In this document: in pieces, positions 5,476 to 56,973 of the stretch
Layout: each line of letters begins with the position of its first letter
How positions within the stretch are numbered: position 1 is the first letter of the stretch
Assembly (NCBI RefSeq): GCF_001194135.2
Contig: NC_068992.1
Span: 23,310,820-23,374,819, forward strand
DNA length: 64,000 nt
Direction of reading: 5' to 3'
Source: Octopus bimaculoides
Lineage: Eukaryota
Program-made: the position numbers and the translations under genes
The notes under the pieces: model-generated
The model's input: the letters and a program-made list of their open reading frames with translations, nothing else
The model's database searches: none
What the model was told of the DNA's origin: nothing

Positions 5476-6183
5476 NNNNNNNNNNNNNNNNNNNNNNNNN
5501 NNNNNNNNNNNNNNNNNNNNNNNNNNNNNNNNNNNNNNNNNNNNNNNNNNNNNNNNNNNNNNNNNNNNNNNNNNNNNNNNNNNNNNNNNNNNNNNNNNNN
5601 NNNNNNNNNNNNNNNNNNNNNNNNNNNNNNNNNNNNNNNNNNNNNNNNNNNNNNNNNNNNNNNNNNNNNNNNNNNNNNNNNNNNNNNNNNNNNNNNNNNN
5701 NNNNNNNNNNNNNNNNNNNNNNNNNNNNNNNNNNNNNNNNNNNNNNNNNNNNNNNNNNNNNNNNNNNNNNNNNNNNNNNNNNNNNNNNNNNNNNNNNNNN
5801 NNNNNNNNNNNNNNNNNNNNNNNNNNNNNNNNNNNNNNNNNNNNNNNNNNNNNNNNNNNNNNNNNNNNNNNNNNNNNNNNNNNNNNNNNNNNNNNNNNNN
5901 NNNNNNNNNNNNNNNNNNNNNNNNNNNNNNNNNNNNNNNNNNNNNNNNNNNNNNNNNNNNNNNNNNNNNNNNNNNNNNNNNNNNNNNNNNNNNNNNNNNN
6001 NNNNNNNNNNNNNNNNNNNNNNNNNNNNNNNNNNNNNNNNNNNNNNNNNNNNNNNNNNNNNNNNNNNNNNNNNNNNNNNNNNNNNNNNNNNNNNNNNNNN
6101 NNNNNNNNNNNNNNNNNNNNNNNNNNNNNNNNNNNNNNNNNNNNNNNNNNNNNNNNNNNNNNNNNNNNNNNNNNNNNNNNNNN
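5476..6183. other. Assembly gap (N run) between microsatellites
   Basis: Continuous N, flanked by (TA)n and (TG)n. Confidence 0.99.
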
Positions 6184-8081: not shown

Positions 8082-8084
8082 GAA

Positions 8085-8432
8085 AATGGAAATAATACAT
8101 TTCTAAATCTCTCAGAGAGATTTATACACCAGCAGCACGATAAAGTGATAGTAAGTTGTCAATTTAATGTGACAGTCCCATGAAAGACAAGAATGTTACT
8201 GTTATTTAGCTCTGGGAATCAAAGATTTTTGTTTGACTTGACACATTTCCTTGACTTTATATTTTCAAAGTGGTGACAAGCACCCGTGAAAATAGTTTCT
8301 GGATCTTGGCTCGTTGGGTGGAGGTGCTTGTCTCCACTTCGAAAACAGGAAACTGTTTCCTAGGGCTAAATAACAGTAGCATTTACCCTTTCATGGGTCT
8401 GTCACATTACATTGGCAACATACTAACACTTT
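8085..8432 (-). mobile_element. Fold-back element, copy 1
   Basis: Outer arms 8142-8218 and 8357-8432 are inverted. Inner inverted pair TTTTCAAAGTGGTGACAAGCACC/GGTGCTTGTCTCCACTTCGAAAA. Perfect 8-bp stem-loop TAAATCTC-TCAGA-GAGATTTA at 8104-8124. Homologous to 37482-37794. Confidence 0.8.
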
Positions 8433-14639: not shown

Positions 14640-15110
14640 TTGATATATTTAATCAAGATATAATATTTTGCCATATATTTGATAGCAACATTTCATTTGT
14701 TTGGTAAATTATTGATCCTTAAGGCGTCAAATTCTTCTCTCTTTGAAGGAGAGAAACACTTAATATCATTTTTAATCTCTTCAAAATTAATAGCCCGTTT
14801 GTCCTCTAAGAAATAGCTCAAAGATATGACAAGATGTTAGTCACATGGAACAGGGTCAGACGTGTAAGGACGATGAGCGAAAACATACGTAGTTAATGCA
14901 GTGACCTTCTGCGTGACTTGTCTAACATGTAATATTGAATGATCATGTAAGAGTAATATTATTTTAGGAATGACCAATAATGAGCCTCTTTTCTGAAAAT
15001 AGAGGAACACTTCAAGTTGAGGACAATAAGTTCCCGCTCTTAATGCCTCATTTTGGTTTAAGATTTCGTGATAGTAAGCTCCATTCATACCCTGGTGTTC
15101 CGTTATAAGA
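14640..15110 (-). mobile_element. mariner transposase C-terminal fragment (pseudogene)
   Basis: ILLLHDHSILHV (~LLHDNARPHV), FAHRPYTSDPVPCD* (~LPHPPYSPDLAPCDY), HLVISLSYFLEDK..NFEEIK...SKREEF..LRINNLPNK* (~GI..LPERW). Confidence 0.85.
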
Positions 15111-17397
15111 AAACCATTATATATAAAAAGACAAACAAAGATTATACTAACAATTGGTAAGTAGCTTGTATTGCAACCATATAGACCTGGAATTTAAAAA
15201 ATATGACCTATGTTTAGAAGAATTTTATCATATTTTTACATCTAAGGGAAATGTAAGAAATTCTAGACAGGAACAGGTTTCAGATGCTTGCACGTGACTA
15301 AGTTCACTTTCGCTCAGTATAAATGAATAATAAACATTTAAACAACGGAATGTTTTCAAATGACGGAATATAAATGATTATCCAATCAAAATTTGAGTTG
15401 AAAATAGTTCGCGTCTAACTTAACGAACAACTCTACATCATACAACGCAGAGTAGATAAACAAAAAAAAAACTTTAAGCAGTTAACTCGAAGGATATTAA
15501 GGAAAGACCCTGAAGAAACTGCACCAATATTATAGTAGGGTTGCAATTGCAACGGTTACTAACCAGTGCAGTTGAAACATGTGTAGGTCTATGTAAAGTT
15601 GTATGTATATAGGAGTGGCTGTGTGTGTGTAGGCGCAGGAGTGGCTGTGAAAGAGAATAAAGAATGAACAGTTTCAGCCGATCAGTATTTAAGTATAAAT
15701 ATATACATATTTATATATTAAAAGATCAAACCTACACAGTGTACAAACGACAGAGAAAATTAACAAACTCGTTTCTTTTCTGCATTAAGAACTCCGTATG
15801 GAGATCCCTAGGTGCAATTAGGATGTTCTTTGTAAGTGCACCCAAGAAATTGCTTCTCTTAATTCTACCTGAATCACAAATTCAACCCAGCTATTCTGTA
15901 TCTGTCTATTAAACCCACGATGACTTCCACACCTACACAAATGTATATCAACCGAATTATAAATCAAGCATGCTACCATGTTATATTTACCTCCAGAATC
16001 TCCTGGAAAACCCAACCGCACACTGCCCCATACTTACCCTGAAACCTATATAAAATATCACGTGTAAGCCGCTGATTCCATTACAATCACACTTTCGCTA
16101 AAAGAAAACCCCAACAAAACATTCTCACAATTATTGCAAGTAAAAAGCCCTTGTAAAACTACAGAACTGTCAAAGATGTATGCATTAATTTTGGTTATAA
16201 CATAATGTTTGTGTGAGAAGTAGAAGTTTTCAGAAGAAGAAATCAATGAACGAACTCGTACATTACAAGTACAACCTGTTAGCAGAACAGTAAATATATA
16301 TAGGAGTTTTCTCAGTTTAAAAATTCCTTGTTATCTTCGTTCAATTGATGTTTGTGTCTTTCTTAGAAATCACATTCTTCTTAAGTGGAAGGCTTCAAAT
16401 AATAAAAGAGGAAAAAAGCGTACATAAATCCGTGCATTATCATATCAATCATGCTGGATTTCAATTATTCAACACAAAACAAACGCGAATGTAACGCAGC
16501 TTCAGCTATGGCAGTATTACTGATAATATATATATACATATATNNNNNNNNNNNNNNNNNNNNNNNNNNNNNNNNNNNNNNNNNNNNNNNNNNNNNNNNN
16601 NNNNNNNNNNNNNNNNNNNNNNNNNNNNNNNNNNNNNNNNNNNNNNNNNNNNNNNNNNNNNNNNNNNNNNNNNNNNNNNNNNNNNNNNNNNNNNNNNNNN
16701 NNNNNNNNATATAAGGAATTAAAAAAATAAAGTCGATGCTAATACATATTTCGCATTTAAATTTCCAAAATCAAAAGCACACTTTTTTAACGTGCATATA
16801 CAATATTTAAGTAAAACAAGGAATTAAAAATGCTATACATTGTGCTTATATTACACGTAAAACACCATTTACTATCCTAATATATTTAAGCATTAGATGT
16901 ACGCTAACGAATACAAATTACATAGTTTTAGTTTAATGGAAGAGCAGCTCAAAATATATTAGTAGAATAATTGAATTATGTTACTGAATAATATACATTT
17001 GATATATTTAATTTTTGAATGTCGTTTGTTGTTAAACTAAGTTTGTATCTCAATCTTTAAAGTTTTAATGACTTCGAATCCTTCAATATCGTAGCACTGT
17101 ATATTAATGTTTATAAAGACATTAAGCAGTGTAAATTATTCGTGTTCACCTAAGGAATTTTATTACGAAATGCATGTTAGAACTGACGTATATTGATTCA
17201 TAATACTTTATCTCTTGTCTTGCTTTCTGGTACGTATTTTTTTAAAAGTTCATCTTGAGTTCTTCCCTCTTTTTCGGCGTATATATAAATATCTGTGCCT
17301 TCCACCGCGCGCGCATCACTCGAAGATATGTACAGACATCCATGCATCACATGCATAAATATATATATATATACATATACATACATATATATGTATG

Positions 17398-18934: not shown

Positions 18935-19300
18935 CACCCTAAGAACTGATATGAACACCATCCAGAGCCAGTCACTGAGGGAGGGAATGTTTCTAGCCCA
19001 GGGGATTAAAGAATACATACAGACAGGCAAATAAATTCTAAGAGACCATCGTCATCAACGACGTAAAACAAATAAAAATGTGCCTTTTAATTGACCTGCG
19101 AGTAGCTACTGATAGAAAAAGCTGAGTAAACAGCTCAGTAAATGTGTTTGAGATGGAGATATCGAGGACATGGCAATTAAAAACCACAACCAACTCTGTT
19201 GTTGTAGGTGCCAATGGGATGACCAACAAAGGTACTTACAAACTTTTTGACCAGATCCTTGGGAAACCAATAATCTGTGCAACTCAAAAAATTGTATTGA
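18935..19300 (+). mobile_element. R4/Dong-like LINE REL endonuclease fragment
   Basis: YEHHPEPVTEGGNV..IHTDRQINSKRP/..IVIND.K..MCLLIDLRVATD..EMEISRTWQLKT..VVVGANG..KG..ILGKP..TQKIVL. The segment 18655-18850 ending in a TAA tail is probably a 3'UTR of a related copy. Confidence 0.8.
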
Positions 19301-19589
19301 AGTGTTGAACAAAATGACAGGAGAATTTGATCATATTTACACAAAACTGTTTGATCCTTCTTTTTGTTTTCCTTTTTATTTTTTCATGTTTCCTCTTTTT
19401 TTCTTTTTTTTTCACCCGTTATACGCTTAAAAATCGAAGACTGACGATGTCTGTCAAGGTGGGAACGCAGGTTGCTCTCGTTCAAATTATTGAATTTGAA
19501 TTTCTTTGATTTTGAATTTCAATATATCACTTTTCATTTTAAACTCGACAAAAACAGGCAAGCTGCCGAGATATTGTTCAAACCAAAAT

Positions 19590-21605: not shown

Positions 21606-21763
21606 TAAAGACAGTCAGAGTATACCCAAATTTGAAACGTACCATCTCTGTGAATATAAGCAAACTATTCCTAAAAATTTCTTTTAAATATTTCTCATGT
21701 AGTACTTTAAGAATGGAAAAGATATATTTATTATATTATAGATTTTAGAGCAATGATTACTTG

Positions 21764-22295
21764 CCAACATAATGTGGCAGCTCTGGTAAGAAGGATTGTT
21801 ACAGTCACTTAGCCCCAGGAAACATCGTCTCTAACTGGCTATACGACACACTATCTGTGTCCTTATAGTTTCGAACAAGGGAGTTTATCGTCCCCACTCA
21901 AACCAAAGCAATATCTGCGTACCAGTGGTTTTCTGGTTTATTTTACTTCATCAGCACAGAATAACTGCTTGGTTAGAGATGGCGCCGCTAAATTCTTGTT
22001 CGAAATATATACTTTTCAGAGTGACACACAGCCGTGCAATTTATTTTGTGCTGATGGAAATAACCCAGAAACCGTTGGTACGCAGATATTGCTTAGGGCT
22101 GAGCGAGAACACTAAATTCCCTTGTTCGAAAATATAAGGATGCAGATAGTGTATTGTATAGCCAGCTGGGGGACGATGTTTGCTAGGGCTAAATAACAGT
22201 CGTCCTAATCAGGACTGCCTCATTATGTTGGGAAATAATCTTAACTCTAGAGTACTGTTTCTAAACGCGTTTCGTTCAGAGATTTAGAAATAATA
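21764..22295 (+). mobile_element. Fold-back element, copy 2
   Basis: Inverted arms about 21764-21968 and 22036-22231. Outer arm CCAACATAATG.GGCAG...ACTGTTATTTAGCCCTAG is shared with copy 1. AGAGATTTAGAAAT follows about 47 nt after the right arm. Confidence 0.8.
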
Positions 22296-22869
22296 TGTTT
22301 CTATCTATTATAGAGTTTCATCGCTTTTATTTAGCTACGTATTTTCACAAAGAAAAAGACTTACCACTAAAATAATATTGGAAACGCCAAATATTTCAAA
22401 TACATTTCCAAAACTGTAATGGACTGTGTTCCAACATGTATTCTGCCGGCGAATACTCTTGAATTTTCTTGTAAACAGAATTTTATAGATATGACTAAGC
22501 TGTAGATTTTATGCACCATTATGTAGGCAGAAATGGTAGGATTTGAGGAAGTAGTTATAAAATAATTTCTAATCCAGTTGGTCACCATTGGAAGTTAACT
22601 GATATAATCTAAAATCTCAGCAGTTTAGAAGCAAATTTAAATATCAATGAATCTACAAACTATAAAGCGTTGAATGTGAGGTCTTACCTACCGGAAAGAA
22701 CAAGTCGTAAATCATACATAAATGAGACAATAGCAGTTCAAAGTTTACACTTATAAATTTGAACGGAATTAAGGAATTTTTGTTTAAGCTACGAAACACT
22801 AGAAAAGTATAGCAAGGAAGAAGAATATCAAGATGTATTCCATACCATGTGTGTGTGTGTGTATGTGTA

Positions 22870-30114: not shown

Positions 30115-31070
30115 NNNNNNNNNNNNNNNNNNNNNNNNNNNNNNNNNNNNNNNNNNNNNNNNNNNNNNNNNNNNNNNNNNNNNNNNNNNNNNNNNNNNNN
30201 NNNNNNNNNNNNNNNNNNNNNNNNNNNNNNNNNNNNNNNNNNNNNNNNNNNNNNNNNNNNNNNNNNNNNNNNNNNNNNNNNNNNNNNNNNNNNNNNNNNN
30301 NNNNNNNNNNNNNNNNNNNNNNNNNNNNNNNNNNNNNNNNNNNNNNNNNNNNNNNNNNNNNNNNNNNNNNNNNNNNNNNNNNNNNNNNNNNNNNNNNNNN
30401 NNNNNNNNNNNNNNNNNNNNNNNNNNNNNNNNNNNNNNNNNNNNNNNNNNNNNNNNNNNNNNNNNNNNNNNNNNNNNNNNNNNNNNNNNNNNNNNNNNNN
30501 NNNNNNNNNNNNNNNNNNNNNNNNNNNNNNNNNNNNNNNNNNNNNNNNNNNNNNNNNNNNNNNNNNNNNNNNNNNNNNNNNNNNNNNNNNNNNNNNNNNN
30601 NNNNNNNNNNNNNNNNNNNNNNNNNNNNNNNNNNNNNNNNNNNNNNNNNNNNNNNNNNNNNNNNNNNNNNNNNNNNNNNNNNNNNNNNNNNNNNNNNNNN
30701 NNNNNNNNNNNNNNNNNNNNNNNNNNNNNNNNNNNNNNNNNNNNNNNNNNNNNNNNNNNNNNNNNNNNNNNNNNNNNNNNNNNNNNNNNNNNNNNNNNNN
30801 NNNNNNNNNNNNNNNNNNNNNNNNNNNNNNNNNNNNNNNNNNNNNNNNNNNNNNNNNNNNNNNNNNNNNNNNNNNNNNNNNNNNNNNNNNNNNNNNNNNN
30901 NNNNNNNNNNNNNNNNNNNNNNNNNNNNNNNNNNNNNNNNNNNNNNNNNNNNNNNNNNNNNNNNNNNNNNNNNNNNNNNNNNNNNNNNNNNNNNNNNNNN
31001 NNNNNNNNNNNNNNNNNNNNNNNNNNNNNNNNNNNNNNNNNNNNNNNNNNNNNNNNNNNNNNNNNNNNNN
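30115..31070. other. Assembly gap (N run)
   Basis: Continuous N after (TA)n. Confidence 0.99.
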
Positions 31071-31332
31071 NAAATTTATCAGAATATTTGGGCTGAAGAT
31101 TGGAATAGTGAAATTTTCATTCACTTAACCATGAAACGATTCGTACCCAATTAACTAAGGGCTTGTTTTGTTTGTGCTTTTCCCTCCGGTTTTTTGTTCT
31201 ATGTGTGCCATAAATATCGCCATCCGTTTTAGAGAAAAATTTGTAGTTTGGAATCAGTAGTTCTTTGACTGCTATTTCTAAATTTTCAGTATGTTGGAGA
31301 AGCAACTCAATTGCTAATCTCTTATATTTATG

Positions 31333-31479: not shown

Positions 31480-31709
31480 GAATATATAGTAATTTGTGAG
31501 CGGAATGAGCTTCAATCACTAGCTAGTGAGTAACACACGCTGAGGACGGGTAACCGCCCACAGACTCGAACATAGGAGGTTATCACTCCCATCTCTAGCC
31601 TTACGTGATACACACGGATTCGAGTCTGTGGGTGGTTACCCGTCCTCAGCGTGCATTACTCACTAGCTAGTGACTGAAGTTCATTCAACTCACAAACTAC
31701 TATATATTC
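31480..31709. repeat. 91-bp inverted repeat with 48-bp spacer
   Basis: Arms 31480-31570 and 31619-31709, 83/91 complementary with no indels. Confidence 0.95.
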
Positions 31710-31983
31710 TTCTAGCGACTCACTGTCGCGGTCACGTAGAACAGAAAGAATGTTTTAATAAATCTCGGAGCGAGATATAAACTGTAGCAATACGGAACCG
31801 TAACATATTTTCCGGCTAAGTAAGGCGTCCTATACAGGACTGTGCTATATACTGCTTAGCATACCGTACATATGTGGAGTGTATATTCATATATACACAC
31901 AAATATGTTAATATGTATATAAAAAGAGGAGAGAGCACGGAAGAGAGAAAGAGAGAGAGAGAGAGAGGGGGAGAGGGAGATAG

Positions 31984-33251: not shown

Positions 33252-33630
33252 GTGGAGGTGAAATGGCTCACTGGTTAGGGTAGCGGACTTGCGGTCATAG
33301 GATCACGGTTTCGATTCCCAGACCGGGCGTTGTGAGTGTTTATTGAGCGAAAACACCTAAAGCTCCACGAGGCTCCGGCAGGGGATGGTGGCGAACTCTG
33401 CTGTACTCTTCCACAACAACTTTCCCTCACCCTTACTTCCTGTTTCTGCTGTACCTGTAATTCAAAGGGCCAGCCTTGTCACTCTGTGTCACGCTGAATA
33501 TCCCCGAGAACTACGTTAAGAGTACACGTGTGTGTGGAGTGCTCAGCCACTTGCACGTTAATTTCACGAGGAGGCTGTTCCGTTGATCGGATTAACTAGA
33601 ACCCTCGTCGTCGTAAGCGACGGAATGCCA
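33252..33630 (+). mobile_element. Full-length tRNA-derived SINE (family A)
   Basis: A box TGGCTCACTGGTTAGG and B box GGTTTCGATTCC. Colinear with a second copy at 48366-48742. Confidence 0.9.
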
Positions 33631-33846
33631 TCAATCTACTTTATCAGGATTTTAACTCACGTGGATCTACGCAGGATTGCACCTAAAGACTTGTGCTCTT
33701 GTTTCTATAACTTGAGACAGCTGAACTATGAACTTTTATGCTACTTTTTCTTCTTTCTTTCCCTCTCCTTCTTCTTGTACTCCCTTCCTGTATGTCATGA
33801 TCACTTTAATATATGCCATTCTCATTTTCCATATGTTCTCCTATAT

Positions 33847-37439: not shown

Positions 37440-38040
37440 ACACCATCGGTTCTGCATACTTGTGAAATTAACGTACAAGTGTAGAATAATACATTTCTAA
37501 ATCTCTCAGAGAAATTTATGCAGTAGTGATACGATGAAGTAGTTGTATGCGGTTAACTTAATGTGACAGTCCCCTGAAAGGAATAATACTACTCCTGGTT
37601 AGACCTAAGAAGCTGCGCCGCTTCCTGTCGGCCTTGATACATTTCCTGTGTCCTTATCTCCCCCACCATTGTAAACAAGGACACAGGAAATGTGTCGAGG
37701 CCGGCAGGAAGCGGTGCAGCTTCCTAGGTCTAATCAACATTAGTATTATTCCCTTCAGGGGACTGTCACATTAAGTTGACAGCATACAACTACTTTAACG
37801 TACAGGTGGCTGAGTACTCTATAGACACGCGTTCCCTTAACGTAGTTCTCAGGGAGATTGAGCCTGATACAGAATGTGACAAGGCTGACCCTTTGAAATA
37901 CAGGTACAACTCAGTTTTGCCAGCTGGGAGGCCTGGAGCAACGAGAAGTAAAGTGTCTTACTGAAGAATACAACCCACTGCCAGCAATTTAACTCAAAAC
38001 CTTATGATAGGGAGTAGAATAGCCCTAAACACTAAGCCAT
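37440..38040 (-). mobile_element. tRNA-derived SINE sharing the family A core, split by a fold-back insertion
   Basis: Core GTACCTGTATTTCAAAGGGTCAGCCTTGTCAC...GAGAACTACGTTAAG at 37795-37925. The SINE tail (GTTAATTTCAC...ACCGATGGTGTGCC) resumes at 37438-37481. Confidence 0.8.
37482..37794 (-). mobile_element. Fold-back element, copy 3, with 14-bp target-site duplication
   Basis: Arms 37537-37655 and 37677-37795 (107/119 complementary, 21-nt loop). Flanks TTAACGTACAAGTG (37468-37481) and TTAACGTACAGGTG (37795-37808). Confidence 0.9.
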
Positions 38041-38122
38041 TTGTTTTCACCAAAGGTATTCTATATGTAATACGAAAAACACGAATACCACTACAGCCAA
38101 AAAGGGTTTTACATATTATAAG

Positions 38123-56385: not shown

Positions 56386-56973
56386 CTCTGTTTCTGTGTA
56401 CATACTCTGCCCCTTCTCTCTCATACACACACACACACATATGTGTATGTATGCGTAGAGGTGCCTGGCTTTGTGGTTAAAACAAACGGTTGTAAATATT
56501 AACGTAAGAATGTACCTTCGATTTCTAGACCGAGATATGTGTTGTGCGCTTGGGCAAAGCATTTCATTCCACGTTCCTCCAGCGAAATCCTGCGACTGAC
56601 CGGTGTCTCATTCAGGGGAAATATATACACCACAGAACCCGGAGAAACTTGTTAATAAGCCTATGGTTCGGAAAGGATTTTAGGTCCTATATATATATAT
56701 ATATNNNNNNNNNNNNNNNNNNNNNNNNNNNNNNNNNNNNNNNNNNNNNNNNNNNNNNNNNNNNNNNNNNNNNNNNNNNNNNNNNNNNNNNNNNNNNNNN
56801 NNNNNNNNNNNNNNNNNNNNNNNNNNNNNNNNNNNNNNNNNNNNNNNNNNNNNNNNNNNNNNNNNNNNNNNNNNNNNNNNNNNNNNNNNNNNNNNNNNNN
56901 NNNNNNNNNNNNNNNNNNNNNNNNNNNNNNNNNNNNNNNNNNNNNNNNNNNNNNNNNNNNNNNNNNNNNNNNN

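Follow-up and report, generated by a model that had tools for sequence, protein, structure and literature searches.

We found that three loci in the analysed stretch of Octopus bimaculoides DNA (64,000 nt, hereafter the window) each carry a long inverted repeat that ends on one side in a short unpaired tail. Our tentative reading, to which we assign a probability of about 0.45, is that these loci are Penelope-like insertions in which two copies of one non-coding template were laid down head-to-head in each event. Since the layout is that of the published Penelope-like insertion signature, the family most likely represents either the 3' portion of a Penelope-like element or some non-autonomous element exploiting one. 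It was considered that the element probably belongs to a known kind and not to a new class. The window itself is eukaryotic non-coding DNA with many microsatellites and is broken by N gaps; long clean open reading frames, tRNA genes and above-threshold Rfam families are all absent from it. Its SINEs appear similar to octopus SINEs.

The first locus (copy A) is a 313-bp insert at 37482-37794 that splits a tRNA-derived SINE, and the earlier note had correctly recognized a unit of this length interrupting a SINE. The inverted repeat of copy A spans 37530-37655 and 37677-37802, is 89% complementary and leaves 21 nt between its arms. When trimmed to the insert, the arms cover 37538-37655 and 37677-37794, with 118 nt each, and a gapped alignment paired 110 of 125 aligned positions. 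The long hairpin with a 21-nt loop that had been described was thereby recovered, and its RNA fold was predicted at -197.6 kcal/mol (z = -22.8 compared to shuffles). Read on the minus strand, the insert ends 3' in a one-sided terminus (37482-37537, minus strand) of 56 nt without a pairing partner, against about 55 nt estimated from the sequence beforehand. This tail holds the motif GAGATTTAGAAAT and a stem-loop at 37498-37518 with a 3-nt loop and a stem of 9 bp, comprising 8 Watson-Crick pairs and one wobble or mismatch. It is attached to the direct (sense) arm at 37538-37655, which is followed by the loop at 37656-37676 and by the tail-less inverted (antisense) arm at 37677-37794, all on the minus strand; the outer end of the inverted arm reads ACT at the junction. 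In the arm alignment, compared with copy C, the loop of copy A appears to continue the template of the direct arm, and for this reason it would not be filler.

We then considered the target site of copy A. The insert is bounded by a 14-bp target-site duplication (left copy TTAACGTACAAGTG at 37468-37481, right copy TTAACGTACAGGTG at 37795-37808, unstranded), with both flanks carrying TTAACGTACA(A/G)GTG. The two copies are identical at 13 of 14 positions, and none of 1000 shuffled flanks gave an equally good match. Two uninterrupted relatives of the central domain of the host SINE serve as paralogous empty sites (33548-33561 on the minus strand, and 48654-48667); both read GAAATTAACGTGCAAGTGGCTGAGC and contain the 14-mer once each, so that the 14-bp duplication claimed for this insert holds with the backing of both sites. 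The host SINE is a minus-strand copy whose 5' part occupies 37809-38050, with the remaining 3' part to the left of 37468 and a tRNA-like head with A-box-like and B-box-like segments near 38043-37985.

The uninterrupted SINEs are located at 33252-33633 and 48366-48740. A central domain of approximately 140 nt is common to the host (37809-37940) and to these two (33450-33561 and 48574-48667), with differing heads and tails. As the host SINE shares only this domain with the other two, it belongs to a different SINE family; heads and tails that differ around a shared domain are what a SINE superfamily with a conserved core shows. In the tRNA-derived SINE at 33252-33633, which also carries a 3' stem-loop (CGTCG-TAAG-CGACG), the 12-bp target duplication ATCTACTTTATC is perfect. 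This indicates that target-primed insertion yields duplications of such length in this genome. The duplications of 13-14 bp in the hairpin family therefore fit target-primed reverse transcription better than a terminal-inverted-repeat (TIR) or rolling-circle transposon. Retrotransposition, as the earlier note had proposed, is supported by the asymmetric ends together with these duplications, which stand beside the 12-bp duplication of a genuine tRNA-SINE. Like the hairpin family, the tRNA-derived SINEs of the window (such as 33252-33633) are short and non-coding, have duplications of 12-14 bp and carry a near-terminal 3' stem-loop. The hairpin family differs from them by lacking a tRNA, 7SL or 5S head, by its unrelated 3' sequence, and by a body that is duplicated in inverted orientation.

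A combination of BLAST and profile search recovered exactly three copies in the window, and the family is thus described here from these three, each of which comes from a diverged subfamily. Copy B (approximately 8082-8430, minus strand, 349 bp) has a 60-nt tail with a perfect 9-bp stem-loop, and its arms are 85% paired where aligned. Copy C (21747-22305, plus strand, 559 bp) consists of a hairpin at 21747-22242, with arms 79% paired, and of a 63-nt tail at 22243-22305 in which the stem-loop is gone and CAGAGATTTAGAAAT is retained. Copy B has the same orientation as copy A, and copy C the opposite one. Both had been noted near 8.1 and 21.8 kb as sharing their outer arms and terminus with copy A, and this proved to be the case. 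The duplication of copy B is unreadable, as the copy sits within an (ATT)n repeat. Copy C has its own 13-bp target duplication (left TATTATAGATTTT at 21734-21746, right TATTATAGAGTTT at 22306-22318, unstranded), with 12 of 13 positions identical, a match equalled by 8 of 1000 shuffles. Examination of the other copies for duplications, which the earlier note had suggested, therefore yielded a second example, again with asymmetric ends.

The boundaries of copies A and C are at most 2-3 nt apart in the alignment. With the tail placed 3', each of the three copies starts with AG at the same template position, and their 3' ends fall 11, 14 or 17 nt past the invariant GAGATTTAGAAAT. By our reading of the alignment, one end would be precise and the tailed end would shift by a few bases. 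The outer end of the inverted arm lies at one template site in all three copies, 56-63 nt short of the other end. It was noted that the tail is the most conserved part of the family, with copies A and B matching at 35 of the last 36 nt compared to approximately 75% in the arms, and that 13 tail nucleotides are invariant across copies A, B and C. In copies A and B, the stem-loop lies 17-22 nt from the 3' end. No monomeric copy turned up when the window was searched with a profile of the template. One weak tail-like profile match (31744-31798; E = 0.065) extends over flanking sequence of another hairpin and probably arose by chance.

Through the comparison of the six arms, oriented from outside to inside, we found that all are collinear on one template. 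The arms differ in length, with about 120 nt in copy A, 145 nt in copy B and 250 nt in copy C. The hairpin tip falls at template positions of approximately 125-150, 130-165 and 255-280, respectively. As in copy A, the loop of copy B seems from the alignment to continue the template of one arm and would not represent filler. Over the outer 80 nt, arm identity within a copy was 0.90, 0.83 and 0.72 for copies A, B and C, and identity between copies was 0.54-0.75. The arms group by copy, each being nearer to its own partner than to the arms of other copies. In 30 of 109 predicted consensus pairs, both sides had changed with pairing kept. The arm mismatches were balanced between G:U and A:C (5:6, 5:4 and 17:13), with no bias toward one RNA strand, and on this ground selection on RNA pairing and an ADAR footprint were both rejected. 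Such a balance would fit neutral decay of the inserted DNA. Provided that each insertion began with identical arms, arm divergence ranks copy A as the youngest and copy C as the oldest; our own rough estimates on the Octopus scale of PMC13282606 place the insertions at approximately 18 million years (A), 20-35 million years (B) and 35-50 million years (C).

Under the Penelope-like reading, the template would comprise at least 280 nt followed by a 3' tail of approximately 60 nt. A staggered cut of 13-14 bp in the target would give rise to the duplication, and both 3' ends of the break would prime cDNA on the same kind of RNA. One cDNA would start near the RNA's 3' end and the other about 60 nt upstream, with both meeting mid-way. 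The direct copy would retain the tail with the conserved GAGATTTAGAAAT motif and the stem-loop, and the inverted copy would be tail-less as a result of starting at the second fixed site, 56-63 nt upstream. Both cDNA copies would stop at variable inner points, which would account for the unequal arm lengths of the three copies and for a loop that continues one arm. Three points of this scheme are inferred: that the intermediate was RNA, that both ends of the cut served as primers, and which enzyme was at work. The fold-back RNA that the earlier note had invoked becomes dispensable in this scheme, given arms that are collinear, have variable inner ends, group by copy and show no strand bias.

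Penelope-like insertions have been described with an inverted copy, a tail at one end and two start sites, and their signature includes variable 5' truncation, a head-to-head inverted copy, target duplications and a preference for microsatellites (PMC8557442, PMC3846280, PMC11167929). Penelope-like elements have also been reported as abundant in Octopus (PMC13282606, PMC8557442). Here, an inverted copy lies head-to-head with a direct copy in 3 of 3 cases, as in Penelope-like insertions with an inverted pseudo-LTR, among them Pen2a_Av of Adineta vaga, Naiad and Poseidon PAc of Anolis, which have variable 5' truncation. The short extension at one end, the two discrete 3' end points, the target duplications and the microsatellite targets are also shared. 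Duplications were found in copy A (14 bp) and copy C (13 bp), longer than the 8-10 bp in the rotifer. The one-sided tail measures 56, 60 and 63 nt, which exceeds the published 30-40 bp. Copy B lies in a microsatellite, as Penelope-like targeting has it. The tips differ in the three copies as 5' truncation would have them, and central deletions of a palindrome would look alike. Non-autonomous relatives of Penelope-like elements are known (MRC1).

Several observations weigh against the Penelope-like reading. All three copies are inverted dimers, whereas the literature describes these as occurring "often", and a built-in hairpin predicts 3 of 3 more naturally. Variable tips would equally result if a long palindrome lost parts of its centre, and the copies number only three. 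The tail is over-long, and no linked enzyme relic, hammerhead or pseudo-LTR accompanies the copies in the window. Specifically, a motif search found no coding relic of a reverse transcriptase or GIY-YIG domain in the window, and Pfam gave no signal in the long open reading frames of the window or in those of copy C. Rfam scans to E = 10 detected no hammerhead ribozyme and no other established RNA motif in copies A-C; the hammerhead occurs only in canonical Penelope-like clades and is absent in Naiad and Chlamys. The matches returned for copies A-C were generic and sub-threshold, mostly to hairpins of miRNA precursors. A partial tandem arrangement of the pseudo-LTR type was absent from the copies, the longest direct repeat being a 16-nt pair in copy C with 75% identity. 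By eye, the loop of copy C holds a 45-nt echo of an arm segment.

We assessed a number of other explanations for the same loci. In a non-autonomous fold-back RNA retroposon, a LINE would recognise the 3' stem-loop tail and the hairpin would be inherited from master copies. Such an element would account for the presence of hairpins in all three copies, for duplications of 13-14 bp that match the 12-bp duplication of the SINE, and for a conserved 3' terminus with its stem-loop 17-22 nt from the end, yet the tip differs from copy to copy along a collinear template, and no strand bias indicates selection on RNA pairing. ARAGORN and Rfam found no Pol III head (tRNA, 7SL, 5S or U) in the family, as had been claimed from the sequence beforehand, and the missing promoter counts against this explanation unless the element is co-transcribed, in which case a Pol III head would be unnecessary. 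An A-rich or simple-repeat tail is also missing from the family, none of the LINE 3' ends in the window matched the tail in a profile search, and a near-perfect duplex of 120-250 bp would be hard to reverse-transcribe. On balance, we regard the fold-back retroposon as possible and doubtful. A dedicated retroelement family that builds fresh, perfect, tailed hairpins, whether by both-end priming or by snap-back, or else a HINE with long duplications, is in our view unlikely. L1-type twin priming was rejected, as it inverts sequence without duplicating it.

A rolling-circle origin was also considered, with the family as a non-autonomous Helentron / Helitron2-type element (HINE, like DINE-1) that has overgrown inverted repeats. 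HINEs and DINE-1 have the same asymmetric ends, with a 5' inverted repeat whose partner lies approximately 55-60 nt from the 3' end and is followed by a palindrome, and they are likewise non-coding and abundant in invertebrates. In the hairpin family, the 5' inverted repeat begins at the 5' end with its partner 56-63 nt from the 3' end (published 38-60), and 17-22 nt separate the 9-bp palindrome from the 3' end (8-35 in published HINEs; PMC4067079). The HINE end geometry calls for subterminal inverted repeats that begin 2-4 nt in from the 5' end and for a palindrome of 5-10 bp; copies A and B fit it, and copy C has lost the palindrome. HINEs target TT, leave no duplication, show terminal T-runs and have inverted repeats of only 12-15 bp. 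In the hairpin family, significant duplications of 13-14 bp occur in two copies and the palindrome takes up the entire body, with a variable tip, an arrangement that has not been described for HINEs. The defining mark of Helentrons and HINEs, a TT target without duplication, was not observed: the junctions read TTAA/AG, TTTT/AG, CTA/CA and ATC/TA (slash at the boundary), with no TT target, and no terminal T-runs are present. The 3' end also shifts by a few bases. Helitrons are active in Octopus (PMC13282606), and those of Chlamydomonas can carry variable duplications (PMC10288648). A HINE is in our view a distinctly improbable source of the loci. A fold-back DNA transposon or MITE, with a transposase cutting at a 13-14 bp stagger and with shorter hairpins arising from central deletions, appeared very unlikely. 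Its appeal lies in the precise 5' end and in arms that are long inverted repeats co-varying between copies. Long palindromes are prone to central deletions, which would account for the variable tips. However, the last 56-63 nt at the 3' end have no inverted counterpart, meaning that the true ends bear no terminal inverted repeats, and this 3' end is imprecise. To our knowledge, no eukaryotic cut-and-paste superfamily makes duplications of 13-14 bp. These duplications and the unpaired 3' terminus together exclude a classical TIR transposon or MITE. The TTAA target of piggyBac or Kolobok was rejected because the duplication is 14 bp.

We also searched for relatives of the family outside the window. 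The six-frame open reading frames of copies A-C and a Tc1-like relic frame gave 0 matches in the protein database, and a pool of window frames with a cephalopod rhodopsin likewise gave 0, in a collection that seems to return nothing for this taxon. Two window frames looked up by exact sequence had no record. A metagenome scan with a word from the arms returned 24 loci, each a chance match of only about 20 nt, such as a termite satellite. This tandem repeat of approximately 110-120 bp from a termite-gut metagenome shares GGGACTGTCACATTAAG with the arms, and it was rejected as a relative since the match of only about 20-24 nt was judged to be chance. When genome and viral collections were scanned with one word from the tail and one from a SINE, a single 18-nt chance match was all that appeared.

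If the Penelope-like reading is true, the locus of copy A would be a clean, small example of the creation of a self-folding hairpin in a single step. Any such locus, once within a transcribed region, would fold into long double-stranded RNA, and the window holds four hairpins of this kind in 61 kb. In the lizard, Penelope is reportedly the sole LINE-like repeat that is heavily edited. For the octopus genome, near-perfect double-stranded RNA loci are reported at exceptional density, along with very high levels of hyper-editing (PMC5625713). Self-folding repeats such as the palindromic Harbinger MITE of Xenopus tropicalis are heavily A-to-I edited; like the hairpin family, this MITE folds by itself into a tight double-stranded RNA without a neighbouring inverted copy (PMC5625713). 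Unlike the family described here, it belongs to the TIR transposons, and its ends are symmetric and its duplication short and of fixed length. Linking a defined insertion mechanism to the supply of double-stranded RNA would be useful and not surprising. Were a dedicated family to be the true explanation, a class of retroelement would be systematically seeding self-folding double-stranded RNA loci in a cephalopod with extreme ADAR editing. For annotators, such insertions may be misfiled as MITEs, as miRNA-like hairpins or as new families.

Additional repeats were encountered elsewhere in the window. Most of the large N gaps (5476-6183, 30115-31071, 50669-50874, 56705-56973 and others) have microsatellites, dinucleotide or otherwise, on their flanks. 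Simple repeats are where the assembly breaks, and some of the inverted or direct repeats reported there are artefacts. Four decayed transposon-like open reading frames were identified by eye at 47077-47460 (minus strand), 14840-15193 (minus), 44087-44269 (minus) and 19126-19305 (plus). Two of them are Tc1/mariner-like and two are retroelement-like (NRPDIIVWD motif), with none reaching the Pfam threshold. A further inverted repeat at 51341-52208 has approximately 200 nt per arm and 463 nt between the arms, and by eye it encloses a mariner-like frame (...EDLGMRRGSAKFMPRL...). It was rejected as a member of the hairpin family, as this putative mariner-like relic has no sequence match to copies A-C; it is probably an internally deleted mariner-like element.

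A second hairpin, unrelated in sequence to the studied family, was noted in the region 31480-31767. Its arms (31480-31570 and 31619-31709) are 91% complementary and enclose a 48-nt loop. A small stem-loop (GCGAC-TCACT-GTCGC) lies in a possible one-sided extension of 48 nt. The putative 10-bp duplication of this hairpin (ATAAAACTCG and ATAAATCTCG) was equalled by 21 of 1000 shuffles. The layout of this hairpin resembles that of the studied family and hints at a general insertion mechanism; given this hairpin, a dedicated family, if there is one, would possibly be one of several.
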